DNA from: Zootoca vivipara
Taxonomy: Eukaryota
Length of the DNA: 64,000 nucleotides
Assembly: GCF_963506605.1 (NCBI RefSeq)
Contig: NC_083280.1
Span: 24,118,001 to 24,182,000 of the forward strand
Direction of reading: 5' to 3'
Under the pieces are notes generated by a model. That model was given only the letters and a program-made list of their open reading frames with translations, made no database searches and had not been told where the DNA came from. Shown in pieces: positions 21,151-56,039 of the stretch; the stretch's first letter is position 1; each line of letters starts with the position of its first letter. Made by a program: the position numbers and the translations under genes.

Positions 21151-21486
21151 TAATCGGGGGCAGCTTGTTAGCCAATGAAAGGGTTTTTAATGGAATAATT
21201 AGTTAAATACTACCCTATTTGTCTAGCAATGGAGATGATGATCCTAAGAGTTGGGTGGGGTAACTCTGTTAACAGGCAGGCTGATCTTTAATGAGGCAAG
21301 TGACCTGGCTATTGTTGATCTGAACTTGGAGCTTACCCTTGTACCTTCGCTATTTCCCCCCTATTTTATTTGACGATATCTGGATGTGAAGATGTTTTCA
21401 GCCAAGGGCTTGGGCTGTATAGCCAGGTTTCCCCCCACCCCCTTCCCGATTGGAGGCCCTCTCAAGTTGTTATTTTCCACATTTAG

Positions 21487-21718
21487 GATAAATGTTACGA
21501 TTCGAGGAGGACATTATTCGGATGAAGTTGGCAACAAAGTGAAAACGTGGATCTGGCCCAACAATTTGCAGAAGTGCGTCTCGAGAGCACCATTTAAGCC
21601 AGTCTTTCTATCCTTGAACCAGAATGTTGGTGTCAGGATAGTTGAGCAAGACAGAGTAGCCATTTCTTTCCTTGCAAGTGGAAAACAGGCAAAAATCAAC
21701 ATAGGAGCAAAAGTAAAG
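21487..21718 (+). CDS. ERICH6: ERICH6 exon
   Basis: GGHYSDEVGN...FKPVFLSLNQNVGVRIVEQD...GAKVK resembles human GGQYSDQAGN...[20 protein letters not shown]; phases 2/0. Confidence 0.92.
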
Positions 21719-23158
21719 GTACTTTATTTCAGAGTTACTATGGGGGAGGGTGGGAATGTTTTGGGGAAAATACAGAAAACGTTTTTCAAAAAAGGAATGC
21801 AGCAGTTTGCTTTGAACTTGCAGAGCTACTTGAAAAGCAAAGTTAAATCGGCCAAAGACTGACACATAGTTTATCTGGTCTGTACAAGACAATGCCTATA
21901 GTTCAGCATCACTTGACCAAATAAACCAAAATGTCAGTCAGATGGAAGTTAGGGTTCCCCCCCTCTAGTGAACAAAAAGAGGGAAACAATTTATAATTTC
22001 AAAAAGATTTACGAAAGCATTTACAGAGATGAATTTGTATAACCAAGAATTCAGGTTGAGACTAAAATGATGTGGCTTATAGGATAAGTTAAGAAAAAAG
22101 CAGACTGAGAACAGGCCAAGAAAGAATATGATTTATATAAAACCTTTGAGTTAAAAATCTAGTAGGTAGAACACTCTTCAGCCATGAAGTTTAAAAGTTG
22201 CTTATGTAATCTGATCCAGATTATAAACGTGCCCATAACTGTTCTTGAACTCCTCTCAAGCGCACATTGCTTAGCAATATAGTTCCATACATTAAATTTC
22301 AGCAAATTTGAAAATGAGAGCAGGAACTGCATGCTTTCTTTTTAACAGGGAGTGCAGGAAATAGCAGTTTTAAGAGAATAAAAGGACATCCACCCAAGTT
22401 CTATTCAGAGTAGATCCACTGAAATTAATGGACCTAAGTTAGCCATTCCCATTAATTTCAATGGGTCTACTATGAGCAGGAATAATATTGGACATATTAG
22501 CAAATGTTAGAGACTCCTGCCCTTCTTGAGGTTTCAGCAAATGTGGTGCCCATGTGCGTGCGAAGGGGGAAGTTTCTGAATACCAATCTGACTTTGAGTT
22601 GGTTTTATGCCTTTTGCCATTTCTGCAGTTTTAATGAGGTTGAATTAAAATAGGGTTAGTGGTTTTTTGTTTGTTTTTTAAGGAGCGTTAAAAAAAACAG
22701 GCTCTCAAGAAGGTAGAAATTAGTGCTCTTTGAACTCCTCAGTCCTTTTCCAATTTGTTTTTGGCTGGGAAGAATGAGAGGGAAATTAAAGTGAACCAAC
22801 AATGCCAACTCCAGGGCTGGCATAGTTAACCCCTGGTCTGAGGGCGTGCCAGGGAATGGGGAAGCACCCTCTTTTTAGCCTTGCCAACATCAGCAAGGTC
22901 TGCCCATCAGTAAATTCTAGGTAAGAAGAGGGAATCTGGTCCTTGCCTCACTTCACGCTCAGAGAGAAGTAAGACTACAATGTTGGTCAGTTTTCTCTCA
23001 CGGTAATACGATTTAATTTCCCTTTATTTCTCTTGATTTAAAACAATACTCACGGTTAGGTTTCCTTCCCTGTGCGACCTTTCTGACTTTCTGCAAGCGA
23101 GAACTGCCATGTGACTTGGGAACTACATTAACTCCTTGCTTTTTTGCTTCCTTAAAAG

Positions 23159-23419
23159 CCGCTTGCTGACCATCACCCGTGGCCGAAGTTTGTGTCTGAA
23201 GATGACCTCTTCCTGTTTGCCTGCCGAATAAAGATTCTCCGCATCTTTGCTAAACTGCAAGGGTGTTTAGATTTTCCTAACAATGACTGGTGGGCTAAGC
23301 TCCAGCTGCCTTCGTTTCTTTTCACTAAGGCTTTGAGGTTAATGAACCTTTGTAAGGAATGTGAAGTAAGTTCTGCTCTGGACACCTTAATCATGGAAAC
23401 ATTAAATTCACCAACCTGA
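23159..23419 (+). CDS. ERICH6: ERICH6 last coding exon (TGA 23417-23419)
   Basis: VSEDDLFLFACRIKILRIFAKLQGCLDFP resembles human [29 protein letters not shown]; the 12 exons total 1567 nt in one open frame. Confidence 0.9.
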   Translation, partial: PLADHHPWPKFVSEDDLFLFACRIKILRIFAKLQGCLDFPNNDWWAKLQLPSFLFTKALRLMNLCKECEVSSALDTLIMETLNSPT

Positions 23420-23815
23420 TCGTGATTATGTTATATAAAGTTACTTGTTTCATTGTTCGAAGGAATATTTACTGTTTTGTTGAATTCTACAAGTATCGGA
23501 AAACAGATCTCAGGATTCATTTAATAACAGTTCCATTTGTGCTGGTCACATAACATGCAGTACCTTCTTGTGCTATACAGCAGAAAAGGGGGACGCGGAG
23601 CCTACTTTAGGCAGGAAGTTAAATTAGATTGGCATTTTAGTACCACCCAACTCTATGATTTAGGTGCTGTTATGGTTCTGAGCCTAGACTCTAATTGAGG
23701 AATTGATCTTAGACAGGTGCACTCCCGAGACAGACAGATGCAACTGTAATGGTCCTGGCAGCATGGGTTGGATCTTTTTCTAGGTTTACAACTTCTGAAG
23801 AGCCAAAAGTTCCTC

Positions 23816-23905
23816 CATAGCTGCCAAGTTATCCCTTTTTTAAAGGGATTTTCCCTTATGCTGAATAGGTTTCTTCGCGAGAAAAGGGAAAACTTGGCAG
23901 CTATG
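23816..23905. mobile_element. 90-bp hAT MITE in the putative ERICH6 3' UTR
   Basis: Perfect 15-bp TIR CATAGCTGCCAAGTT/AACTTGGCAGCTATG; TSD agttcctc/agttactc. Confidence 0.75.
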
Positions 23906-24168
23906 AGTTACTCACATCTGATCTGCAGCAGGAGTTGATTCCCATCATATATTACTTTGTACGGTGGCCTTTCACAAGCAGTTGAAGAATGTAACAATAC
24001 TAGAAACCAACTGCTTATGGGCTATGCCTGTCAAGTTTCCCTGAACAGCTGAATGGCCACTAATTTCTGTTCTCCGTCTTTTTAGAAAACAGGCAGCAAG
24101 TCAATGGAAGCAACAGCTATATGGGATGTCCTCCCAAGAGCAGGGGAGGGGGTTAAGTTTAACAATGT

Positions 24169-24250
24169 AATAAATAACAATGTAATACAGCAATAAGGGT
24201 GGGAGAAGAACGTAAAGGCTGGAGAGAGATTTGGGTTTTTATTGTTTATT
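24169..24250. terminator. Facing polyadenylation signals: AATAAA (+) 24169-24174; AATAAA (-) 24238-24243 and 24245-24250
   Basis: Hexamers read directly; assignment to ERICH6 (+) and the GPCR (-) is inferred from position. Confidence 0.4.
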
Positions 24251-24710
24251 GATGCTTGGATTAAATTAACTGCATAGAAATTGGTACTCAAACTAGACCC
24301 AACACATTTTCCCTTCTAGCTCGTTTACCTAGGCCACATGTGGAACCAGATAACCAGGCAAAAAGGAACATATATCTTACAAAGAGATGGTAGACTGGAT
24401 AACACCACAAACAAAATTCTGTCTTAGGGTAAAATTATTTGCGCACTTGTTCCCAAAAGGCAATTATTAAAAAGAACACTATGGGGAAATGTATGCATCA
24501 CTGTTTTCTTAGCTCACTGTTGATCTCTGCGTCACCAAATTATGGTTAACTGCCCAGTAGTGGAATAGATAGAATAGGAAGCCCAAACCTTAGTTCAGAA
24601 AACTTGGTTGCGCATTTGGACTTTTTTCTGCATTACCTTTTTTACTGATGATCAGTGCATAATAAGCTTTCCACCTGCTTTGTGGTGGGTTTTCTCTCTT
24701 CCGCCTTGGA

Positions 24711-25757
24711 TCAAGAAACGGTGAGTACTCCTCTGAAACTGTTGAAGGGAAGAGATTTAGGCGGTTGATCCCCAGATGAATTTCGTCTTGTGGCTCCTCC
24801 GCAGGGTAAGTCACTTTGGTTTATGATGTTGAAATGGGTCGCTGCCAACCTGTTGGACCTGTGGGGTTTTATTTGTCCCTTTCCCTTACACTTCATCATT
24901 TTGACCAACTGGGTTCTTATATCCTTGCTGTATAGTGAATAGATAAAAGGATTTATCAGAGAATTGGCTTCTCCTAAAATGAATAACAAATCCTTCAGCT
25001 GTGAGCTCAGGCTGCAGGAGGTACAAGTAGCTTTCACAATGGCAGTTACATAATAAGGGCTCCAGAAGAGGACAAAACAGATAATCATAATGAGGACTGT
25101 CCTCAGAGCTTTGAAATGGCGGAGAGGAGCAGTAGGGGTATCTGGGTGCAGGCAGACACGCTGGATCTGCTTCTGATGAAGATAAGCAATCCTTCCCACC
25201 GAGATATGTAAACAGACCAAGGTCAGCAAGGCAGGGATATAGATGCCAAAGCAGATTATGTACAGGTAGTCACTCTTGGCTGCTGCCAGGACCCCACAGG
25301 TACCTGAGAGTTCACTCAGGCGAAGTTGTGAGAAAATAAGTGGCATGTGTCCCACCAAGAAGGAAACCGTCCACAGGACAACAAGAGAGAAGACTATAGG
25401 TTTCTTGCTCATAAGTGTAGGGTAATGAAGAGGCAACTTCACTGCCAAGTACCTGTCCAGAGAAACCAAAAGCAAGGTGAGAATGGACCCAATGCAAGGA
25501 GTGATGCTCATGCAGATCCGCAAGAGACAAAGAAACAGATTTTGGTCAAAAAGTGCATCTGTTGCATCATCCAAAGCTTCCCCAATGCACATCACACCAA
25601 CCAGCAGATCAGCAGCTGCCAAGTTAAGGATGAAGACATAGTTTCTGCTTGGTTTCTTCTTTCTCAGCTGGCAGATGACTATGATCACCAAGAGGTTGGA
25701 TGATGGGATGAAGACGCTTAAGAAGGCATGCAGCACTGTACACAATGTATCCGGCAT
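24711..25757 (-). CDS. Intronless class A GPCR, GPR119-like (glucose-dependent insulinotropic receptor-like), 348 aa
   Basis: Seven hydrophobic segments; NLAAAD, DRY, FWSP, NSLINPFIY; GPR119-like LCLLR, HQKQI, FKALRTV, CTSCSL, KDIRTQL; ATG in AAGAAGATGC context; no stops or frameshifts. Confidence 0.9.
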   Translation of the reverse strand: MPDTLCTVLHAFLSVFIPSSNLLVIIVICQLRKKKPSRNYVFILNLAAADLLVGVMCIGEALDDATDALFDQNLFLCLLRICMSITPCIGSILTLLLVSLDRYLAVKLPLHYPTLMSKKPIVFSLVVLWTVSFLVGHMPLIFSQLRLSELSGTCGVLAAAKSDYLYIICFGIYIPALLTLVCLHISVGRIAYLHQKQIQRVCLHPDTPTAPLRHFKALRTVLIMIICFVLFWSPYYVTAIVKATCTSCSLSSQLKDLLFILGEANSLINPFIYSLYSKDIRTQLVKMMKCKGKGQIKPHRSNRLAATHFNIINQSDLPCGGATRRNSSGDQPPKSLPFNSFRGVLTVS

Positions 25758-28700
25758 CTTCTTTGAGAAGCAGCAGTGGAAACTACAGGGTTTAACATAT
25801 GCCTTGCCTATGCACCTTACAATCAATCCACAAGAGGCGACATCAGGCTGGGAGGAAACATACTACTTTTGAGAAACTGGTACAAGTAACAGCAGCAAGA
25901 AGTGATGATCCCGTGTCTAGAATCCATTGGCTCTGCTCTGCTGGTCAGGGGGTTCTTTTCAAACCGCTGGGAAATGTTTGCCATAGAGAGAGATTGCCAG
26001 CATCACTGTAGCTTCCGAGTTCTTTTCCCCTTTGTGAATATAGGTTTTTCTTTTTCATCTGGCAGAGATGTGTCTGAAGATGCATGAAGGCTTCAGGCAC
26101 AATGAACTCATTGGCTTGAGGAGGGGGAAAACACCTGGGTTGGGCAGTGATCAGTTCCTGAACCGGTCTTTGACGCAGAAAGATAAGGAAGGCGTTTGAC
26201 AAACAGAGTGGAGAAACATTGTGAGCTCCTCCCCACCATTAGGCAGCTAAAAGGAGCTCATGCAGTTTAAAAACCATGTCCTGTTTGCATGCAGGAAAAT
26301 ATTCCTGTGTGTTTATGCTATTAATGCCAATGGAGTCAAATCATTTGATCTCGGGTAGAAAACATACTTCAGTTACTACGGCCAGAAAAAGGTCATTGTT
26401 TCCAGTTTAGTGGATACTGGATGTAAATACAAGGCTAGGATGTGAATTGGTAAAAGCTCACCAGAATCCAAGCTATCCAATACTGGTTGGCTTTATTAAG
26501 CCAAACGTAAAATGGGGGCTTAGTACTTCCTACATTTTATTTAGGAATGCAATCCTGGTATCCAGTATTTCCTTATTTGGATTAAGTCCCATTGAACTCA
26601 ATCTCTAACAAGACAAGAATAGGATCACACTGTTAACTTGACAAAACACTCTTTAAAAATCAATTGTTCCGCATCCTCCAGCTTTCTTTCAAAGCAGGGT
26701 AGGCTTGGAGGTAAATCACATGCACTGCCTGCAAAATGTTCCAGGTATGGCTAGGAGAGCCCTCTTCTTGAAAACTGTTGCCAGTCAGTGTAGAAAAAAT
26801 GCTGAACTACGGTAGCTGTATTAATATTCTGACTCGGTGTAAGGGAGCTTCCTAACACTTGATGTTTTTGGTTGCCAAGAAATCTTGCATTTTTCTTTTA
26901 AGTTCAAGGTTATGTGTTCGAGAGTTGTGATTTAGGACAGGGGTAAAACACTGTGTTGTCTTAGAGGCATTTTGGTCTGTAACTCCTGTCAGCCCCAGAT
27001 AGCATGGTCAAGGTTGATTGACAGTTCAACAGCATCTGTTCTACACAGAACACTTGCAGTTTCCATCCTCCTGAAATCAATGTTTTGCAATGACATTGCA
27101 ATATAAAAGTGACTAGTAGAGTACGAAGAGTAAGAGGGGTGGTACAAGAAGGGTCAGAACAAATTAGTAAATCTCCACCACCATTCCCTAAAGCCAAACC
27201 CAGCTTCCTGGCAGTTATAGAAACTAAGTCTGTTGCTTATATTTCTGAGAGTAACCAGAGCAGGGCCCCAAATAGAGAAGGACAAGAAAAGATAAATTAC
27301 ATAAAATTGGGTGCTGGAAAGAATAAGCAGCCCATAAATAGTTGCAACAAATAGAACTGCGCTCTGTTAAGGTTTGAGAGAAAAGAGAATTTTATAGTGT
27401 ACAGACAAAGGTATACCCAACTGTGCTATATTTAGACAACTGCAAGGAACTGGTTCAACTCAGGACTCACTCTAATATGTTGTAAATTTATCCTCTGTCC
27501 AAACAGTATTTTCATTAAGTTCACATTTACTGCAGTTTCCAGTTTTATTGTCAACCATTCCAAGATAGGTATCACTAGCGACTACTTGTTAATGGCCACC
27601 AGAAGAGTTTCAGTAATAGCTCTGCAAACACTGCTTTGGAGAGATTGTACCTTGTGGCTGTTCCTAGGCAATTCACACAGAACATCTGCCAAGCTTTTAG
27701 GGCCTGCAAGCTTCTAATCCTAGGTCTTTAAAACAGTGGCTAGTTGCAGCTATGAGAAATAGGGACCCAACAGGGTAAAGCTCATAGGACCATCCTGCAG
27801 AATTGATGTTGTATTGCCTATTGATAGTGTCCTCCAAGAAGTTTCAACTGGAAAAAAGTAAGAGGTGGGGGGTGGGGAGAGAGACAGAAATAATCTTTTC
27901 AAAGGCATTACCCGAAGTATTTTGCAGCACCTTGAAAACAGGAAAGGCAAGGCAACAGAATTTAAGGTTCTATGAAGTAGGAAACAATCCATTTTATAAT
28001 TTGAGCACCAAAGTATTATTTAATCATTTTGATTGGAAGCCCACAAGAATATTGAGTAAAAACAAGTATATGGCTTTGGGTGCTCAATAAAATTGTGCGT
28101 GAATTCACAATTTTGTGTGTGAATTCAGTGGGACTTTACTTTTTTTCAGTGTTTGTAGGGCCAAACCCTATGGTGTTCTCAGTCAAAAGATTTGTGAGAG
28201 TTGAGTGCTTTTGGTTTACTGAAGACCAGTTATGAAGGATTAAACAAGTGACGTTTCCCATATTGCAAGGGTAGGAACTCTTCAGCCTTCCATATTTATT
28301 TTTAGTTCAACTTTATCAGCACCAGCTAGCAAAGCTAATGGTCAGGGACATGTAGTCTAGCAATAACCAGAGGGCCATAGGGTACCACACAACCACACAT
28401 ACACGTAGACAGACAGCATGCAAAACATTATTTCTTCTTTAAACTCTCATTCTGTTGTTTTAAAAATACTGTGAGTCAGGGGTGGCTAACCTGTAGCCTT
28501 TCAAGTATTGAACTTCAATTCCAATTAGTCCCAGCCAGCTTGGCCAGTGGTCAGAGATGATGGACAATATCTGGAAGGTCACTGGTTAGCCACCCATGCT
28601 GCAGATCAGAAGTACAGAACCTGATCTGGCCAGCAGGATATTCTTTTAACTCCTACCCCTTGTGGGCTGAATTTGGTGGGGAAAGTTACCCACCAGAAAA

Positions 28701-29519
28701 CTGCCTTATGTCAGTGATGTCACCATGCTTGCAAAAAACAACACTCTGTGTGGTGTTTTGAACCAATGCTGATCAGCAGGCTTGAAGTCATGCCCTATGA
28801 GTTGAAGGGCAGTGACTTCAACTATACCTTTTGCAGGGATTGGCTGCAAAAGTGCATTCTCCAAGGGCAACCAGATATTTATGGAGACATGACTCTCTTT
28901 GCCCCATGCCTGACATCACATGACATCAGGAGTGGGACAGGTGGGCATTGTTTCGGGTAAACAGTCTTGCAGGTCCAACTTGGTCCTCCGGCACAGGTCC
29001 CCCACCCCCACCCCCGCTGTAAAGAACTGAAATTAAAAGTAACTCTGTTATTAAAATAACCGAATGCTACAAGTAAAGGGGCTTTGGAATGATCTAGTAT
29101 AAATTACGGGAACAAGCATAAATTATGCTGGCACTAGAATGTGAAGAATGGAGGCAAATCACAAGATTTGTATCCATAACAAACGAAGGTTTCCCTTTTG
29201 TTTACTTGATGAATACAAACACTGCTTCCAAGACATCATACCAAACCTGCTAAGAAGGGTAGGAACAAGCAACTAATAACCTTGTAGCAGGTTAATGCTT
29301 GGGAGGGAAAGGCTTGACGTGAATGTGGACAGGAGGCAGCCTGGGAGGAACCTAGCTGCATGTAGCAAAATAAAATTATGAAAGAGAGCTTAAAGGACCA
29401 CAACCACCAGTCAGTCTCTGCCTCAAATGCAACTCCTCCCTGGTTTTAGGATTCTTCTCTTGAACACCCCCTACTCAGTGCCAGATTTACGTATAAGCTA
29501 AACAAGCTATAGCTTAGGA

Positions 29520-30319
29520 CATGGGTAGGCAAACTAAGGCCGGGGGGCTGGATTCGGCCCAATCACCTTCTCAATCCAGCCCGCAGACGGTCCAGGAATC
29601 AGAGTGTTTTTACATGAGTAGAATGTGTGCTTTTATTTAAAATGTGGGGCTCTATGTGGGGCTACCTTTGAAGGTGACCCGGAAACTACAATTAATCCAG
29701 AATGCGGCAGCTAGACTGGTGACTGGGAGTGGCCGCCGAGACCACATAACACCGGTCCTGAAAGACCTACATTGGCTCCCAGTACGTTTCCGAGCACAAT
29801 TCAAAGTGTTGGTGCTGACCTTTAAAGCCCTAAACGGCCTCGGTCCAGTATACCTGAAGGAGCGTCTCCACCCCCATTGTTCTACCCGGATACTGAGGTC
29901 CAGCGCTGAGGGCCTTCTGGCAGTTCCCTCGCTACGAGAAGCCAAGCTGCAGGGAACCAGGCAGAGGGCCTTCTCGGTAGTGGCACCCACCCTGTGGAAT
30001 GCCCTCCCGCCAAAGGTCAAAGAGAACAACAATTACCAGACCTTTAGAAGGCATCTTAAGGCAGCCCTGTTTAGGGAAGCTTTTAATGTTTGATGGATTT
30101 CTGTATTTTAATGTTTTGTTGGAAGCCGCCCAGAGTGGCTGGGGGAACCCGGCCAGATGGGTGGGGTATTATTATTATTATTAGTAATATGCATCTCTGG
30201 GTTATTTTGGGGGCATAGGAATTCGTTCATTTCCCCCCTCAAAAAAATATAGTTCAGCCCCCTGCAAGGTCTGAGGAACAGTGGGCCAGCCCCCTGCTGA
30301 AAAAGTTTGCTGACCCCTG
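29520..30319. mobile_element. hAT (Charlie-like) MITE (middle layer)
   Basis: TIRs CATGGGTAGGCAAACT / AGTTTGCTGACCCCTG; TSD gcttagga; uninterrupted relative at 38756-39071. Confidence 0.8.
29645..30186 (+). mobile_element. L2 LINE 3' fragment (inner layer)
   Basis: ORF LQLIQNAAARLVTG...HITPVLKDLHWLPVRFRAQFKVLVLTFKALNGLGP is the L2 ORF2 C-terminus; 3' UTR and (TAT)n tail. Confidence 0.88.
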
Positions 30320-33300
30320 GCTTAGGACTCTCTTGGGGGCCTAAAAAAAATTAAAGGGGAAAAAAACCCTGGATGTACATTTCCAAAATATAAGTTCAAC
30401 AATTACTTTGATAAAATACATATTTTGTTATGTGCAAATGGCTTTAGATACCCATTAGGTCCATAAATTACCATATAGCATACATCCAACACAAAAAACA
30501 GCGACAATTTGCTGTGGACAAAGGACAGCTGGACATATAAAGGGCCCCATTACCTTCAGTAGCTTAGGGCCTCATCAAACCTAAATCCGGCCCTGCCCCT
30601 ACTTGAGTGTTAAATTCAAAGTTGATTAAAATTCTGGTTCATTCTCAGAGTAACTACCTCAGTGACTAGTACAGCAGTAAGTCCTCATCTCTGTTCTTCC
30701 CCAGATTTCCAAGTGGGGCAACAGTGGGCTCACTGCATGGCCAGAAGCTAGAAGATACATACCAACTTCCTAAGTGGCAAGAGATGCTGCACATTGTGCT
30801 TTTTACATGGCTGCTAGTGTCACAGCCCTGTTGCAATGCCATGAAGCTAGTTTTAAAACCATGCACTCTCAAAGCAGGAAGGTTCAAAAATAGTGTTGAT
30901 GTTCTGGATGGCTACAGTTTATGGAAATTAACAACCTAGCAACACACCTGAGCAACCACAAACACAGGTGCACTCTGCTTGCTTGATACTAAAACCGTTT
31001 GTTCACATGGAGGTACATTATTCATGGGAAAAGAAAATCCTTCCTTCACAAGATACATTCAGGGTGAGGGGAGGGGATTATACTGAATGCTGAGAGTTGG
31101 GGTGCATTTCACTGGTTATTCAAAAGGCTCAGGAGCTGATCAACAGATTTGTCAGTAATATGTGACGGTCTGTAATTTACAACTCCAGCTGCGTTAAAGC
31201 CAACATGCACATGTAACTCATATCCATCAAGTATCTGTTGCACTCAGATACAGACTGAAAACTTCAAAGACAAATCATATCACAATATACTCAAATTAGA
31301 AACAAAACAGGTGAATGAGCATTAAAAGCTTGTATTAATGTTAGCTATATATGGATGAAAACTGCAGGCCTTTTACAGTTACTGCCTACTGACTAAATAG
31401 CTATTCCTTCCCTAACTCACTAGACCAACAGTGATAAATAAATAAATATATTATTATTATTTGTGCCCTGCCCATCTGGCTGAGTTTCCCCAGCCACTCT
31501 GAGCAGCTTCCATTAAAATACATTAAAATCTCAGACATTAAAAACTTCCCTAAACATAACCCTAAACTTCCCTAAAAATATGCAGCTTTTCCAACAACAT
31601 AGTGGCATAAAACCACTTAGATGAAAATGCAATAAATTACAGAATAAATTTACTGCAGTTCCTGTTGACAAGTACAATGCCAGTACAGGTGACGAATCAC
31701 TTATTTGACTACTACTGCAAAAGTTTCCTGCACGTGGAGACTTCTTACTCATTCTGATTGTTGCCCAAGTTCCATCTTTCAGTTAGTGTGTCACAATAAT
31801 GACAGTTTATTTGCATATGCTTGCCAAATGCTGAGGAAAAGATGCTGTACATCAAATGTTTTCTCGTGAGCACCAACAATTTATGAACTTCAGACTTTCA
31901 TATAGTGCTAGCAATCTACTTGCAGAAAACATATTAGGTATTTGTTTCTTTTTAAAATGAAACATATGACTTTTCTACAATTTGACTACAACGGACACAA
32001 TAAACCATTTTTTAAAAAATACATTAGAAAAACTGAGGTCCCCTTTGCATTTACCTGGGGTTCCTAGTCTGGCTATGGAAGGGGACAAGCCACTGTTCAT
32101 TTGTGTATACATGCATGTATGCCTGTATGTAATTCAAGGCTTCAAAATGTTACCTTGTTTCAGTTAAATTCTTCACAAATATGTCATTATTAAACATGTG
32201 ATATAGAAACACAGTGTGTGTTCCAAATTACATTCTATTTTTGTTTTGCTCATTCTAATATTTTTACCCAGAATTCAAGTCTAAACAAAAGGATGAGTTA
32301 TGTTTCCGCCACCTCCAGATGCTTCCAAGTAAGTTACTGTGTTAGAACTGAGAGTGCAGTTCTGGTCACAGAACACACTCACAAATGGAGGCAAAAGGTA
32401 GGTGGTCCCGTGTCCCCCCCCCCCAATTCTCCTTGCAGTTACAGAAAAACGGCATGGGTTGCTGTATAAGGAATTTGCAAAATACGCTTGAGCTTGTGGA
32501 ATCCTCTGGTGGTTTACAATCCCTTCTGTAAATAGAACAGCTGCACTGGATCCAACCAAACAGCCTTTTCTTAAATATAAATAGTTGTGGTTTATCATAG
32601 ACTTCCAACTCATTCTTCCAGCTCAGTAATTAGAATGTTTAATTTCCCTTCTATCTAGTAAGCCAGAGGAGAGGGAACGGCTGTTACAAGGTAAGTATTC
32701 TATCACAGGCAATGTATTTGGTATTTTCCAAACCTAAGTCTGTAACTGTAACTTGATGTGTTGTGAACTGCAGAAGTTGAGTTTCAAACAAGAAAGCCAC
32801 CATAAACATTAAACATTGTCTTGTGTTTTTCTTCTTCTTCACGCACAGTCGCCAGACAGATAAATTCATAAAATGATTCGAGGTCTTTCACACAGTAGAT
32901 GAAATTTCTTTATTTAAATTAGTTTGCTTAGCTCATATTTAGGACAGAATAAAGGCCAAGCTATTTGATCATTTAGAGTGGCCCAGAAACAAGACTTCAA
33001 AATTGCTGAGGGAATTCGAACAGCACTTGGTCTTCTTTGAAGTCATGACACTTAGGTACTTATTCTGCATATAGTTTTGTTTCTATAATTTATTATACAA
33101 TGCACCATTCACTCAGCAATATACTCTGAAAATATACAAAACTTACATAACCAAATCCGCAATGTTTGACAGCCATCAATTTTTATCCTGACCAGTTTAA
33201 AGGATAACCAGTACTCCTAAGAGATCAATTTTAACTACAAATAAAACATAAATTTCACACACAGTAGATCAGACAATTTTTCCAATGAAAAAAATAAGGT

Positions 33301-33682
33301 TATTGAAGTATATTGTCATCTTCTTAGAAATGAAAATAAGTGTTGGGTCTAGGCTATGGGTTGTATCCAACATTGGTCATACTCGGAGCAGACCCAGTAA
33401 ATAATGAACTGTTCTGTGGGTCTAGTTCAAGTATAACTTAGCTGGACTAGCCCTAAGTTAGATGCACTTAAACTACATTGATTTCAATTGGAACTAAGTG
33501 CAATTAACTATGGATTCAACCCAAAACATTGTTATCGGTTAATGTCTGCATTGTCTAGCTCTAGAGTGGTGAATTAACTTAAAAAAACACACCCTGCGAT
33601 ATAGTATTATTGCACTCCTTGAATGTGCAGTACTTTGAAACATACCAGCACTGAAAGGGGTCTTGCATTAAGATATTCAGGA

Positions 33683-33768
33683 GCAACATGAAAACGAGGA
33701 GAGCATCCAGTCTGTACCAACAAGTATTCTGTCTTCAGTACAGGCCGTCATTTATTTCGTTCATGTTG
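33683..33768 (-). promoter_or_regulatory. SELENOT: SECIS element (type II) of SELENOT in non-coding exon 6 (acceptor at 33792)
   Basis: Minus strand: CAACATGAACGA..ATGAC-GGCCTGTACTG-AA-GACAGAATACTTGT-TGGTACAGACT-GGAT..TCGTTTTCATGTTG, i.e. AUGA/GA core, 11-bp helix II, apical AA with mini-stem, and helix I. Confidence 0.9.
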
Positions 33769-34424
33769 TCTTTTGAAAGTGTCGCTTAATGTCTGAAAAA
33801 CATAGCAAAAACATAGCAGGTTGTACTACAAAAATAGATCAAATAAAATACCCAAAGCCATTCTATATCCAATGTTGCCATGGAAAACCTACTATATTCA
33901 GTTAGAACAACACACTAGAAGCTCAGCAAACAGAAATAATGAACTGATATTTAATATACATGCCACCAGGTTTCTACTACATGAGACAACAGGTGTAGAA
34001 GATATCTAGCAAAGGAAAGAGCTAACACTGACAGTCGCCAAGTTCCAGAAGTTCCCTCTGGAACTGAACATGTTAAGCCTATGTTGAACATGTGTATGAA
34101 ACATTAATTGCATGAGAGTTAGTTGCAGTATTTTTTTTACTAGCCTGCAAAGAGGCCAATAGTTTCTTTTTCCAAAGGAAGAGAAGCTCCTTCCTCCACA
34201 GACAACACAGAAAAACAACAGTCTGGAAAGTAGGGGTGGAATTATCTATCCCTGATTCACCAGTCCACTTACTTGCCTGCATAAAATCCCTTGTCAGCCA
34301 AAAGCTATCAGGTGAGTTATTAAATGCAAGGATTATATATTACCATTTTATCTTGCAAATCAAATAACTATCTGAGTAATCTTCAAAAAAACTTACAAGA
34401 AGTTTTCAGTACTGATGGATGGGG

Positions 34425-34549
34425 CTATGATCTATGGTGGGGCATTTGTTCCAGGTGCACGTTGAGTTTCATTTCATTATCAAGGATTTGAACAAGCTGC
34501 TGCATGGAAGGAAGGTGCCCAGACTGTAGCTTAGACCACACTGGAACAT
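34425..34549 (-). CDS. SELENOT: SELENOT exon 5 coding part (TAG 34425-34427; exon runs to 34397)
   Basis: DVPVWSKLQSGHLPSMQQLVQILDNEMKLNVHLEQMPHHRS*; GTAAGT donor 28 nt after the stop. Confidence 0.95.
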
Positions 34550-34944
34550 CTAAATAAGAAGTGTAGGAGGTAAAGAACATGATTAGCATATTAAACTACT
34601 TTTTGTACAGTGTAGGAACTGCCAGTTACTGCTCTTATTTTATGCTTGCCAGGATATCCAGAGAAAAACAACTGATACAAGCTTTTGAATATACGTTCAC
34701 TCCCACTCCTGTCTCCATCCCACAAATACCAGTTTCTCGCCAATGTACATGCAATGAAGTATTACCAAGCTCCTGAAGAAACTAGATTTAAAAAATACTT
34801 CTGTTTACAAGATTTGCATGAATAATTTGTGTGCAAAGTTCTTTCTTGACAGATTACTCTGTCAATGTTCAATCAACTTACACTGGAGAGGTCTTTTAAA
34901 TGGGACATTACTTAAGAATTGTTAATAGTATAGCCTTAGTTAGA

Positions 34945-35310
34945 GGGACGTGGGTGGCGCTGTGGTCTAAACCACTGAGCCTAGGGCTTGCCAATTGGAA
35001 GGTCGGTGGTTCGAATCCCCGCGACGGGGTGAGTTCCCATTGCTGGGTCCCAGCTCCTGCCAACCTAGCAGTCCAAAAGCACCTCAAAGTGCAAGTAGAT
35101 AAATAGGTACTGCTCTGGCGGGAAGGTAAACAGCGTTTCCGTGTGCTGCTCTGGTCCGCCAGAAGCGGCTTACGTCATGCTGACCACATAACCCAGAAGC
35201 TGTCTGCGGACAAACGCCGGCTCCCTCGGCCTATATAGCGAGATGAATGCGCAACCCCAGAGGTGTCCGTGACTGGACCCAACGGTCAGGGGTACTTTTA
35301 CCTTTACCTT
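34945..35310 (+). mobile_element. Sauria SINE, full length, in SELENOT intron 4
   Basis: gggacgtgggtggcgctgtgg...acctttacctt; TSD tatagccttagtta/tatagctttagtta. Confidence 0.88.
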
Positions 35311-35505
35311 TATAGCTTTAGTTATTTGTGAAAGTTTAGGGATCACTCACACTAGTCACAATTTTGACATAGGGTCATGTCAAACCTTTTATTTCGGTCT
35401 TTTGAACCAAATGCAGCTGGTAGCTTCATAAATACTTAATGGGTACAATTCACACAAAATCCCTCTTAAGCTAACGAGAATACACAAAAGCTGTTCAGAA
35501 CTCAC

Positions 35506-35593
35506 CATTTAAAGTTATTTCAAATGCACCTGTTGACATACAAATGTTCTCAGTCATGCTGCTCAGGAAGAAAACCATCATACAAGCATAGAC
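35506..35593 (-). CDS. SELENOT: SELENOT exon 4
   Basis: VYACMMVFFLSSMTENICMSTGAFEITLN; 88 nt; AG/GT. Confidence 0.95.
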
Positions 35594-37649: not shown

Positions 37650-37760
37650 CTATAAATAGGCTGAGGAAGGTAATTTTCCCCTTCAATGCGGATGTCTGGG
37701 TACCGCTGGCTAATAACCTGCATGTACTCCTCAAACACCCGTCTGTATCCTCAGGAAACA
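37650..37760 (-). CDS. SELENOT: SELENOT exon 2 with the selenocysteine UGA (37751-37753)
   Basis: C-V-S-U-GYRRVFEEYMQVISQRYPDIRIEGENYLPQPIYR (CxxU Rdx motif); 111 nt. Confidence 0.96.
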
Positions 37761-39071: not shown

Positions 39072-40508
39072 CCCTAGGCCAACCAACATCTCTCACCACC
39101 AAAGGAACACAAGCAAACAGCAGAGAACCTGCACAAGCGACGCTGACAAAAAACCTCACATATATTAAGTATAACAGAAACATCATCACCCGACTAGTTT
39201 CCGTGGTGTTAGGTACAATCTGTGAGTTTCAGGGTGAGTTCTTTTCTTTTAACCAAACATTGATTTAAAGGGAAGTTTAGACCACATTCTAGTCCATTAT
39301 GTGGGGTTAGCCTCGTAGCCTATGTCATCCTCTCATTGTTTTTTGCCTATGTTGAGGGGGTTTGTGGGATTTTGGAGCAGTGTTTTGTACTGTATATTGT
39401 GGATTCCATCCCCTTGCCATGTCCATTTGTTGTTAGGAGATTTTGAAGGAAACTGTTTTGAAGCAAACTAGTCTCGAAAATATTTCGAACACAAATAATC
39501 CACAATTTCCTTCCAGGAAATTTATACATAATGGTGATCAGGACATAGGGATACTGTACACCAGAAGAACAAAATTTCCAGATAATGTTTATGATTCTAG
39601 CCTTGAGTTTCCTTTATTTGCCTCCTAGTTTGATTCTCTTCTGAGTTTTATTTTGAGAGGCACAGTTCGGCCTCACGGTTGTCCTCTTCAAAAACAAGGG
39701 AGGTTTATTTTACGTTTGTTCGGGTTTTTTTTAAAGAAAAATAAAACTGGGATTTTCACATTCTTGATTTTAAAAAAGGCTAAATAGCTACTGAGGAATG
39801 TACACTATTCACAAATATTACTCAAAACTTTCAGTAATAGAACTGGGAACCTAGAAGACTAATGTGAAATGCTTTTTAAATGACTCTGCTTTTCTTTCCC
39901 TTTGGTCCCAACTGTGATGCGTTGCTATGCTGATGTAACACTGGTAACACAAGGAGTAACAATGCCTGAAAAAAACTGCAATAACTAGATGGTGAAACTT
40001 TAAAAATGAAGAATGTTTCCAACACAAGAATGAACAGTGCTGAAGCTGATAAAGCAAGCATGTTACAGAAAGAAAACTGGATTGCTAGATATGGGCAAAT
40101 GCTTAAAAACTATTCTAATCGTTACTCCGTTGAATACTGGTACATATTCCTGCGTATCCTGCGTATACTACTTTTTAACCCAGGAAAATCTACTCAAAAG
40201 TCGGGGGTCGTCTTATAAGCTGGGTCGTATTTCTTATACGGCAAGTATATCCCAAACTCTATTTTAACTGGAAAAGTTGGGGGTTGTCTTATACGCCCAG
40301 TCATTTTATACGCTGGAATATACAGTGTATTTTTAGAGGAAAGTACTAACATTTTAGGCCCACACTTTAATTGACTTTCCTATTTTTGCTAATTCCAAAT
40401 CCATTATTCATACTCAGACTGAAGTCTCATATCCAATCCAAACAGCAGTTTGCACAATAAAAAAATTCCTTCAGTAGCACCTTAAAGACCAACTAAGTTT
40501 ATATTTTG

Positions 40509-40546
40509 GTATGAGCTTTCGTGTGCATGCACACTTCTTCAGATAC
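40509..40546 (-). ncRNA. Minimal hammerhead ribozyme motif, sense to the SELENOT pre-mRNA
   Basis: Reverse complement reads GTAT-CTGAAGA-A-GTGTGCATGCACAC-GAAA-GCTC-ATAC. Confidence 0.6.
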
Positions 40547-40550
40547 AGGT

Positions 40551-40588
40551 GTATCTGAAGAAGTGTGCATGCACACGAAAGCTCATAC
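40551..40588 (+). ncRNA. Minimal hammerhead ribozyme motif (other arm)
   Basis: GTAT-CTGAAGA-A-GTGTGCATGCACAC-GAAA-GCTC-ATAC. Confidence 0.6.
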
Positions 40589-41323
40589 CAAAATATAAAC
40601 TTAGTTGGTCTTTAAGGTGCTACTGAAGGAATTTTTTTATTTTGCTTCGACTCAGACCAACACGGCTACCTACCTGTAAGCAGTTTGCACATAAATATAT
40701 TATTAGCAACTTTGTTAATACTGTAAAATGTTGTTTGTGACTTGTCTAAGTTTTCCTACTTTAGCTACAAAATGACTTACTGAAACCCATCACTAACTAC
40801 AATTTGCTGTTTGAAGTTCCTTTATATAAAACGTTGTGCAATTCTAAGCAGCTTTGCTCAGATAGGAGCCTCAGCAACTTCATTAGGACAGTCCTTTTAT
40901 ACAGAGGTACCTCTGGTTATGAACTTAACTGTGATTGAGTCTCAGTTAAACATGTGGCTAGTTCAGATGACAACCTTGAGTTAGGTTAAGAGCTTTGAGA
41001 ACTTAAAGAAGAAAAGCCACTTGATCCAGGGACAGTCCACACATATATTGCCCTATTCCAACCTCTTTTTCTTAATGGTGACTGCTCTTGCTCAGGCTGC
41101 ACAGAAAAAGCATTTTGGTTCCAGAAATTCATTCCTATTGCACAGATAAAATATAACTGATAGAATTCTACAGGATGGGGTATTAATATATGAAAACAGA
41201 CCAGATCCAATGATCCCAAGGCATGCACTTCTAGATGGTAGAGATGTCAGGTGCCATCCTGCTGCCCAGGCCTCTTCCATTGGTTGCAAGTGGTAGAAAA
41301 GCCAGGTACAAAATGTGCCTAGC

Positions 41324-45012: not shown

Positions 45013-45163
45013 NNNNNNNNNNNNNNNNNNNNNNNNNNNNNNNNNNNNNNNNNNNNNNNNNNNNNNNNNNNNNNNNNNNNNNNNNNNNNNNNNNNNNNNN
45101 NNNNNNNNNNNNNNNNNNNNNNNNNNNNNNNNNNNNNNNNNNNNNNNNNNNNNNNNNNNNNNN
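45013..45163. other. Assembly gap (151 N)
   Basis: N run. Confidence 1.
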
Positions 45164-50666: not shown

Positions 50667-50815
50667 NNNNNNNNNNNNNNNNNNNNNNNNNNNNNNNNNN
50701 NNNNNNNNNNNNNNNNNNNNNNNNNNNNNNNNNNNNNNNNNNNNNNNNNNNNNNNNNNNNNNNNNNNNNNNNNNNNNNNNNNNNNNNNNNNNNNNNNNNN
50801 NNNNNNNNNNNNNNN
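50667..50815. other. Assembly gap (149 N)
   Basis: N run. Confidence 1.
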
Positions 50816-54708: not shown

Positions 54709-55470
54709 TCAGGGATGAGAAACTACGGTAGTAAAGAAGAATTCAGAAGAAGTGCTGCAGATAATGTACAAACAAATTCAAAGCATCTGGTAACAAATTT
54801 GTGGGATTAAATCACAACCATATTCATTCTTTAAAAAATAAAAATGGCTACATGGCACAGCTATACCAAGTGTCTATTATGGTGCTGTGCCAGCAGGGCC
54901 TCCTTCAATAGTAGTTGGTATGCTTTATTAAGGTTTACAGCCTGATTTGCCCGAAAGAGCCAAAATCTATTTAAAAACAGGAGCATTTTCACAGAAATAC
55001 ATTTATTTGTTTTGGAAATATGAACTATATGTTAAAATTATAAAGGCTTAATGTGCCACTTTTTTAGGTGAGGGAAGAAGTTACTGTACTTCAGTTGCAC
55101 AGCCTATTTGAAAAGAAATATTTAAGATTAGTCTGCCTTTACTCCCATAGACTTAAAAAACAACCACGTACTGATCTGACAGCAGAAAAGCACTTGTGCA
55201 AACCAGTGCTTACATATACCTTTCCTATATTATGTGTACCTCAGCTGCTTTTATAAACAATACAGGATTATAGTTGGGTGGGGCAAGTGGGTAGGGGAAT
55301 CCAATCTTGGCATTTGCAAAGTCCTAGTTAAATGGTCTTCAATAGTGCTAATTGTCTGTTGAAGCGGAAGAACAAAGGACTGGATTTAATATCGTGCCCC
55401 CTACCCTTTCCCAGAGCTGCAAAGACATTTTTCAGCAAGACATTTTACAACAGAGGCAACAGTTACTTAC

Positions 55471-56039
55471 AAGTTTAGAGCTAGTCACAGGTTTGTTTCT
55501 CAGAGCTGGGGGCCTGTAAGCTTGGGCAGCCTTGGGCTCATCGTTCGGCACTTTGCTCGGAACAGCATATGTTACCGCCTTCGCTGGAAAGACGCCATCC
55601 AAAAAGGGTTGCCAGGCAACTTGCCAAAGTTCTGCGTTCTGCTGGACTTCATACTTGTATAGGACAGGGCCTGTGTAATGCCAGATCTTGTACCCATTCC
55701 CAACCCGTAGCCTTGGAGAACATGTAGCTGTTACAATATGTTCCCCATCGGGGCACCAGGCAAAGTACGTGGAATCCGAGGCCTGTGGTTTCGAAATGAG
55801 TTTGTAGTTTTTAACGTCCCACACGTCCAGTTGCCCATTGAGATTCCCAAATCCAGCTAAGACTAAGATGTGTCCTTGAGGGCTGTAGTAGGCAGCATTG
55901 TGTGGGCCGGTTCCAAAGTCAAACACAGGGTCGCATTTCAGATTGAAGATTGTAGCCTTGGCAGGCATAAAACCATAGACGACACAAAACTCTGCGGAAT
56001 TGGGGCTCCAGGTTGCATCATAAATAGGACCATTTTTTG
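55471..56039 (-). CDS. EIF2A: EIF2A large exon (beta-propeller C-terminal part)
   Basis: KNGPIYD...MPAKATIFNLKCDPVFDFGTGP...AYRPPALRNKPVTSSKL; 569 nt. Confidence 0.97.

Follow-up and report, generated by a model that had tools for sequence, protein, structure and literature searches.

GPR119, the glucose-dependent insulinotropic receptor, is a drug target in diabetes and obesity whose evolutionary history is usually described as that of a single-copy gene, and intronless coding sequences (CDS) are the norm in its family. A one-residue shift of the proline in transmembrane helix (TM) 5, P176 in the human protein, is a distinguishing feature of the receptor (PMC9671963), and its gene adjoins SLC25A14 (UCP5) and RBMX2 in fish and human according to the legend of a published figure (PMC3064598). 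The survey 'Cartography of rhodopsin-like GPCRs across vertebrate genomes' proposed a potential subtype, named GPR119B, for a further GPR119-type clade with members in gar and five sauropsids, to which it gave one sentence and one Ensembl ID, ENSLOCP00000002170 (PMC6504862, 2019). The GPR185 and GPR188 sets of the same survey show the same pattern, in which therian mammals lost an ancient paralog that fishes, amphibians and sauropsids retain; they belong to other receptor families, whereas the mammalian sister of GPR119B has been studied thoroughly as a drug target and its ligand complexes have been solved, which allows residue-level predictions for GPR119B. Here we analyse a stretch of 64,000 nucleotides from the lizard Zootoca vivipara (contig NC_083280.1, positions 24,118,001 to 24,182,000 of the forward strand), referred to as the window, in which an uninterrupted open reading frame (ORF) between ERICH6 and SELENOT very probably represents lizard GPR119B, a functional single-exon class A G protein-coupled receptor (GPCR) and an ancient paralog of GPR119.

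The existence of this gene is already known from NCBI annotation and from the one survey of 2019, and the present work confirms and sharpens it. The clade of the window protein is, like the GPR119B of the survey, a clade of gar and sauropsids that is distinct from GPR119 and devoid of mammals and teleosts, and the name is used here in this sense; the gar protein in our trees (P0393) was not matched to the Ensembl ID of the paper. The window clade also holds bowfin and is wider, extending to amphibians, lungfish, bichir and sturgeon, and the survey entry comes without synteny, dating, residue analysis or function. Besides the wider distribution, the present analysis adds a pre-gnathostome dating based on a skate sequence, the formal rejection of a lineage-specific origin, evidence for constraint and transcription, and a predicted change at the ligand head-group site. 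In a literature search neither a functional study of GPR119B nor a paper other than PMC6504862 using this name was found.

Class, family and phylogenetic position

The receptor ORF is read on the minus strand from an ATG at 25757 to a stop codon at 24713-24711, and retranslation yields 348 uninterrupted amino acids in a single exon. Counted from an upstream in-frame TTG it comprises 371 amino acids, which makes it the longest ORF of the window, the next longest having 255. An earlier reading of the DNA alone, called the original prediction below, had described a 348-residue single-exon receptor with seven TM helices and GPR119 motifs, and all motifs that it listed are present in the translation: LCLLR in TM3, HQKQI after TM5, FKALRTV, CTSCSL in the third extracellular loop (ECL3), LGEANSLINPFIY and KDIRTQL. 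Moreover, residues 21-273 match the Pfam family 7tm_1 (PF00001; E 3.7e-40). The location between ERICH6 and SELENOT was also read correctly, as a FAM194 exon on the plus strand and SELENOT exons on the minus strand flank the receptor, and so was the divergence from human GPR119, to which, as to the clade A protein of Podarcis described below, the window protein is about 31% identical.

Among all sequences of the PDB, searched with phmmer, chains of human GPR119 are the best match of the window protein (E 3e-42, 148 bits), followed as the next family by the histamine H2 receptor (E 1e-25, 93 bits). An AlphaFold2 model built from a 50-sequence alignment (mean pLDDT 79, pTM 0.74) comprises seven long helices plus helix 8 and a tail that is disordered from residue 298 onwards. 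The six top Foldseek matches of this model are GPR119-Gs complexes (TMt 0.88-0.91, 33% identity), with the A2A and beta-1 receptors ranked after them among at least 500 listed matches to GPCR structures. The microswitches of class A are found at D101-R102-Y103, W232-S-P234 and N269-P-F-I-Y273 together with a disulfide between C77 and C154, and all four elements are invariant or nearly so in the 50-sequence alignment. In domain, fold and microswitches the protein is thus a class A (rhodopsin-like) GPCR.

Is this receptor GPR119 itself? A maximum likelihood (ML) tree of 60 sequences was calculated in IQ-TREE under the LG+C20+F+G4 posterior mean site frequency (PMSF) model from 357 alignment columns with aminergic receptors as outgroup. 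The window protein and 25 others form one clade, designated B (support 100/100), and 27 true GPR119 sequences, including those of human, opossum and elephant, form another, designated A (100/99). A and B are sisters (support for A+B, 100/98) with invertebrate GPR119-like proteins just outside, and a quick version of the tree agrees with the PMSF tree. The original prediction had proposed a second gene of GPR119 type besides the GPR119 ortholog, and this is what the trees return; lacertid lizards carry both genes. The window protein belongs to the broad GPR119 family (A+B) and is not a strict ortholog of human GPR119, since it stands outside clade A, has changed head-group residues and has other neighbours.

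Compared with GPR119 (human Xq26.1; PDB 7WCM, 7XZ5), the window protein is likewise a class A receptor whose N-terminus is very short and whose CDS lacks introns. Both share the disulfide between C3.25 and ECL2, the shifted TM5 proline, W6.48, DRY, NPxxY, the CxxC motif of ECL3, the lysine of the first intracellular loop (ICL1) and I5.73. They differ in clade and in locus, which is ERICH6-SELENOT instead of SLC25A14-RBMX2; neither SLC25A14 nor RBMX2 was seen among the neighbours in the window, which is annotated in part. In addition, they differ by the changes L61E, Q65D, M82I, F157L (valine in the window protein itself), F241Y, E261K, R262D, W265F and W7.56 to Y.

Distribution and origin of the two clades

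A word-indexed protein search with the window protein returned about 80 clusters of close relatives. The closest is from Lacerta agilis (95% identity), followed by other squamates (63-77%), crocodilians and turtles (62-66%), birds (54-63%), frogs (52-59%) and axolotl, caecilians, lungfish, sturgeon and bichir (50-55%). Among these clusters there was no mammalian or teleost protein save one of herring (37%), which was later assigned to clade A. Most of the relatives are annotated as 'glucose-dependent insulinotropic receptor(-like)', and the lacertid orthologs carry the name with '-like', in agreement with the guess in the original prediction that automated annotation might list the gene as 'GPR119-like'. 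Among 1.84 billion cluster representatives, searched exhaustively with HMMER, only ten proteins reached E <= 1e-30; those looked up include a second Python protein ('glucose-dependent insulinotropic receptor', 32%), a second Microcaecilia protein and three teleost proteins. The same search matched a starfish 'GPR119-like' protein, and those of mussel and acorn worm fell just below the E cut-off. When the second Python protein served as query, the true GPR119 set was recovered, comprising human and about 50 other mammalian clusters, marsupials, squamates including Podarcis muralis, tuatara, turtles, ducks, tinamous, salamanders, a caecilian and many teleosts. A word search with a profile of bichir, sturgeon and lungfish added gar, bowfin and two further salamanders, all of B type, and a skate protein.

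Taken together, clade B contains squamates, birds, crocodilians, turtles, all three amphibian orders, lungfish, bichir, sturgeon, gar and bowfin, and clade A contains mammals, sauropsids, salamanders, a caecilian, teleosts and skate. Python, Elgaria, Sceloporus, Eublepharis, Paroedura, Hemicordylus, Candoia, axolotl, Pleurodeles and Microcaecilia each contribute one protein to A and one to B, and both clades are also represented in the turtle (Pelodiscus, Pelusios) and duck (Cairina) lineages. No mammalian or teleost member of clade B was found in the three large searches of annotated proteins, and no clade A protein of frogs, crocodilians or holosteans was among the matches to the second Python protein. 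Within annotated proteins, frogs, crocodilians, gar, bowfin, sturgeon and bichir are thus found with B only and mammals and teleosts with A only, a distribution that provisionally suggests mosaic loss. The original prediction held that the gene was kept in reptiles and lost in mammals: its presence in reptiles stands and the searches returned no mammalian B, but retention turned out to be much wider than reptiles. If the two genes arose by whole-genome duplication, the reciprocal loss, with mammals and teleosts keeping A and frogs apparently B, would be a case of differential ohnolog retention.

The proteins of frog, gar and gharial (P0054, P0037, P0393, P0020) bear the plain NCBI name 'glucose-dependent insulinotropic receptor', yet they fall into clade B. 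Reciprocal loss combined with a naming trap through annotation transfer is a probable explanation for the frog, gar and crocodilian data, and 'GPR119' annotations in these animals probably denote the B paralog. Since frogs and gar apparently have B only, the 'gpr119' of Xenopus or gar would be the wrong ortholog for studying mammalian GPR119 biology.

The exact window protein is recorded in NCBI, UniRef and nr, where it is placed on a 98.2-Mb contig. Its 90% cluster unites Lacerta agilis, Zootoca vivipara and three Podarcis species, all five of which have a clade A protein as well. Where lacertid locations are recorded, the chromosome that carries A measures 47-51 Mb and the one that carries B 96-102 Mb; in other squamates and in axolotl A and B likewise lie on contigs of different size. 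In Microcaecilia unicolor A (P0123) and B (P0069) lie on contigs of identical size (221,182,781 bp), so that the two genes may share a chromosome there, unlike in squamates and axolotl. Lacertid Z chromosomes carry genes orthologous to those of chicken 4p and human X, and mbnl3 has been tested as a candidate Z-linked gene (PMC6534595); by this homology the true GPR119 of lacertids (P0408-P0411 in other lacertid genomes), that of this lizard included, may be Z-linked.

How old is the duplication that separated the two receptors? In a second tree gar (P0393) and bowfin (P0398) stand inside clade B, and skate stands at the base of A (100/97), outside the A sequences of bony vertebrates (99/94). 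Since skate branches within the A lineage, with the invertebrate proteins outside A+B, the split of A and B predates that of cartilaginous and bony vertebrates and postdates the separation from the invertebrates sampled. In a tree that is without cyclostome sequences, the duplication is accordingly younger than the separation from invertebrate deuterostomes and older than crown gnathostomes.

This dating bears on several other explanations for the gene. It could be a divergent lizard ortholog of mammalian GPR119 that left the X-syntenic block for the SELENOT locus, as the NCBI names without '-like' of frog, gar and some other B members and the position of GPR119 as closest solved relative might suggest; but mammalian GPR119 groups with other lizard proteins in A and the window protein in B with the supports given above, lacertids carry both genes, and identity to human GPR119 and to the Podarcis A protein is low, so that we consider a translocated ortholog highly improbable. 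The single-exon CDS would also be expected of a sauropsid- or squamate-specific duplicate that became intronless by retroposition. Such a CDS is usual in this family, though, and amphibian, lungfish, bichir, sturgeon, gar and bowfin orthologs share one clade with the window protein. Constraining the tree to a duplication within sauropsids lowers the log-likelihood by 361 and is rejected by the approximately unbiased (AU) test (p-AU 1.2e-6), which leaves a lineage-specific duplicate or retrocopy with next to no probability. For an ancient paralog, an origin in the early vertebrate genome duplications (1R/2R) is the most likely mechanism and, judged from tree and gene order, a probable one, as it fits the timing of the duplication and the location of B in a 3q25-type block as against that of GPR119 beside SLC25A14 and RBMX2. 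We take human 3q24-25, 13q and Xq26 to share the paralogs ZIC1/2/3, MBNL1/2/3, RAP2B/A/C, ERICH6/ERICH6B and SLC25A14/SLC25A30, which would suit an ohnolog block; no usable published listing of this paralogon was found in the literature. Alternatively, the paralog may have arisen in the vertebrate stem by a small-scale duplication, segmental or tandem with later dispersal. The tree dates the split only to the interval between invertebrate deuterostomes and crown gnathostomes, and the equal contig sizes in Microcaecilia, perhaps reflecting one chromosome, are in line with such an event. It appears unlikely to us in view of the different contig sizes of A and B in all squamates and axolotl and of the UCP5-RBMX2 neighbourhood of GPR119 in both fish and human, as far as the figure legend goes (PMC3064598).

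Binding pocket, G protein contacts and constraint

Residues of functional importance in human GPR119 (PMC9671963; bioRxiv 10.64898/2026.08.27.747701) were mapped onto an alignment of 27 clade A and 26 clade B sequences (Table 1). The shifted TM5 proline that sets GPR119 apart is invariant in all sequences of both clades. Of the contacts to Gs, the ICL1 lysine is kept in 22 of 26 clade B sequences, isoleucine or leucine at 5.73 in all 26, leucine in the second intracellular loop (ICL2) in all 26 and histidine or glutamine at 5.69 in 25; the window protein itself keeps the hydrophobic ICL2 residue as L110, and H195 (H5.69) is kept in squamates as H194.

Table 1. Human GPR119 residues and their counterparts in the window protein and in clade B
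Human GPR119	Role or site	Window protein	Clade B
C78-C155	shared; TM3-ECL2 disulfide	C77-C154	
P176	shared; shifted TM5 proline	P175	
W238	shared; toggle	W232	
K35	shared; ICL1, salt bridge to G-beta	K34	
I199 (I5.73)	shared; Gs contact	I198	
F174	pocket	Y173	
L94	pocket	L93	
F7	head group/stacking gate	C6	
L61	head group/stacking gate	E60	E, 23/26
Q65 (E in most of A)			D, 25/26
M82	head group/stacking gate	I81	I, L or V
F157	head group/stacking gate	V156	L, 20/26
A90			I
G173			I or V
F241	head group/stacking gate	Y235	Y, 26/26
E261	head group/stacking gate	K255	K or R, 22/26
R262			D, 24/26
W265	head group/stacking gate	F259	F, 25/26
W282			Y

The residues that form the head-group site for oleoylethanolamide (OEA) and the stacking gate are invariant or nearly so in clade A; clade B has other residues in their place, and these are conserved in turn. 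M82, F241, E261 and W265 occur in 27 of 27 clade A sequences; skate has the A-type F7, F241, E261 and W265, but isoleucine at position 82. Compared with the invertebrate GPR119-like proteins, both clades carry derived states at the head-group sites. In human GPR119 alanine mutants of F157, W265, F241, M82, E261 and R262 abolish or cripple signalling (PMC9671963; bioRxiv 10.64898/2026.08.27.747701).

How might GPR119B work? The retained TM5 proline, C3.25-ECL2 disulfide, W6.48, DRY, NPxxY, ICL1 lysine and I5.73 argue for a GPR119-like tunnel and for Gs coupling. GPR119B, a lipid sensor in the original prediction, would probably take a hydrophobic or amphipathic ligand into a tunnel between TM3, TM5 and TM6 and probably signal via Gs, raising cyclic adenosine monophosphate (cAMP). 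In place of the OEA head-group site it would present the B-conserved acidic residues E2.60, D2.64 and D7.36 together with K7.35, F7.39 and Y6.51. Because these exchanges are conserved within B, ligand specificity is expected to differ from that of GPR119, an expectation that we hold by a narrow measure. The three acidic residues at the mouth of the pocket hint, speculatively, at a ligand with a cationic head group. Tentatively, then, GPR119B could be the receptor for a different endogenous ligand in birds, reptiles, amphibians and basal fishes, an amphipathic one whose head group would be cationic or otherwise different. For research on chicken, Xenopus and lizards it offers an orphan receptor, a subtype as old and as conserved as GPR119 and different from it at the head-group site.

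Several lines of evidence indicate that the gene is maintained. Between lizards and amphibians, compared in the same species pairs, identity is 50-54% for B and 50-56% for A, so that B is about as conserved as A. Reads and contigs of the same species contain 11 variants in the CDS, 8 synonymous and 3 non-synonymous (K196R, N310D, V347I), of which N310D and V347I fall into the disordered C-terminal tail. With 244 synonymous and 800 non-synonymous sites the ratio of non-synonymous to synonymous polymorphism (pN/pS) is about 0.11, and the probability of at least 8 synonymous variants among 11 under neutrality is below 0.001 by our own binomial estimate. GPR119B is under purifying selection.

For transcription, three raw RNA-seq runs of Zootoca vivipara were mapped to positions 23001-28900, with about 6% of each run read. 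Run X19 covers 24380-25955 continuously at a depth of 0.5-2.4, the first mate always being on the plus strand, and over the 3' end of ERICH6 (23001-23591) RNA is found in the opposite orientation only, with molecule ends at about 23412-23421. The opposite orientations over the two genes indicate a stranded library and transcription of the receptor from its own (minus) strand. Run X21 has few reads on the receptor and run X20, in the part that was read, none. No splice joints were reported across the receptor region in this mapping, and the end of a 1225-nt contig from run X1, at 24255, lies near the AATAAA signals at 24250-24238. Transcription of GPR119B is real but low. The gene is thus neither the sole GPR119-type gene nested among GPR119 orthologs nor a recent retrocopy with dN/dS near 1 and no expression, the two outcomes named in the original prediction as speaking against a retained paralog: the ML trees separate it from the ortholog clade, and the AU test, the pN/pS value and the strand-specific RNA argue against the retrocopy.

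Could the gene nevertheless be a non-functional relic, intact by chance or recently released from constraint? The very low RNA depth and the one run in three without reads would agree with this; on the other hand, dozens of species whose divergence covers well over 400 million years show an intact ORF, conservation between lizards and amphibians is as strong in B as in A, synonymous variants prevail with two of the three non-synonymous ones in the disordered tail, and all core GPCR microswitches are intact, which makes a relic very improbable. More weight attaches to redundancy, that is, to a GPR119B that shares its ligands, OEA, 2-oleoylglycerol (2-OG) and lysophosphatidylcholine (LPC), and its role with GPR119. 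The tunnel residues are largely kept (I92, L93, I168, Y/F173, W232, P175), as are those in contact with Gs (K34, I198 and, in squamates, H194). Against redundancy, the signalling-critical human residues F157, W265, E261, M82, F241 and R262 are all swapped, in a manner conserved across B, and many lineages have retained both A and B for hundreds of millions of years, a co-retention that itself argues against redundancy; we therefore regard it as rather doubtful.

The reading of the gene as a functional, ancient and distinct paralog has to be held against several points that weigh the other way. The mechanism proposed for GPR119B is an extrapolation from residue conservation only. The pN/pS estimate derives from 11 variants taken from contigs and reads, and RNA support is thin, both in the depth of the best run and in the two others. 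That B is missing in mammals and teleosts, and A in frogs, is concluded from annotated proteins and word-limited searches, not from genome scans. True GPR119 (clade A) was not located in this genome itself and is known from protein records of five lacertids.

The locus and its surroundings

The features of the window are listed in Table 2. The ATG of GPR119B stands in the context aagATGc, with A at -3. The genes follow each other in the order ERICH6 (+), receptor (-), SELENOT (-) and EIF2A (-), which, apart from the extra receptor, we take to be the gene order of human 3q25.1. Runs of N occupy 45013-45163 and 50667-50815 of the window.

Table 2. Features annotated in the 64-kb window
Feature	Position	Strand	Evidence
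ERICH6 exon region (FAM194 domain), convergent with GPR119B	21386..21859	+	Pfam FAM194, E 3.9e-25
Probable GPR119B 3' untranslated region (UTR)	24230..24710	-	two overlapping AATAAA at 24250-24245 and 24243-24238; RNA coverage
GPR119B stop codon TGA	24711..24713	-	sequence
GPR119B CDS, 348 codons, single exon, class A GPCR	24714..25757	-	ORF, Pfam, PDB match, ML trees, AlphaFold2/Foldseek
Probable GPR119B 5' UTR or proximal promoter	25758..25955	-	strand-specific reads to ~25955 (run X19)
Another SELENOT exon (VYACMMVFFLSS...AFEITLNG), approximate bounds	35504..35593	-	six-frame motif scan
SELENOT exon, in-frame UGA (selenocysteine) in CVS-U-GY redox motif, approximate bounds	37650..37756	-	six-frame motif scan
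EIF2A exon region	55435..55968	-	Pfam eIF2A, E 2.3e-42

SELENOT, whose in-frame UGA lies at about 37.7 kb, needs a selenocysteine insertion sequence (SECIS) element in the 3' UTR, for which the region of about 30000-35500 on the minus strand comes into question. No SECIS match for SELENOT was found in an Rfam scan of the whole window at the gathering threshold, and the element may score below this threshold. The only Rfam gathering match in the window is tRNA-like (RF00005, 52686-52742 on the minus strand, 34.9 bits, partial model 9-63) and is probably a fragment of a tRNA-derived short interspersed element (SINE) in or near EIF2A.

In the stretch where ERICH6 and GPR119B converge with their 3' ends sits a palindromic element of 90 bp (23816-23905) that resembles a miniature inverted-repeat transposable element (MITE), with terminal inverted repeats of 24 nt (CATAGCTGCCAAGTT.TCCCTTTT). 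The idea that it belongs to the same family as a hairpin at 40456-40679 was dropped, as a pattern search revealed no second copy in the window. On both strands the element is covered 100-470x by the RNA runs, and the loose ends to either side of it are unrelated, which together indicate that many genomic copies of it are transcribed.

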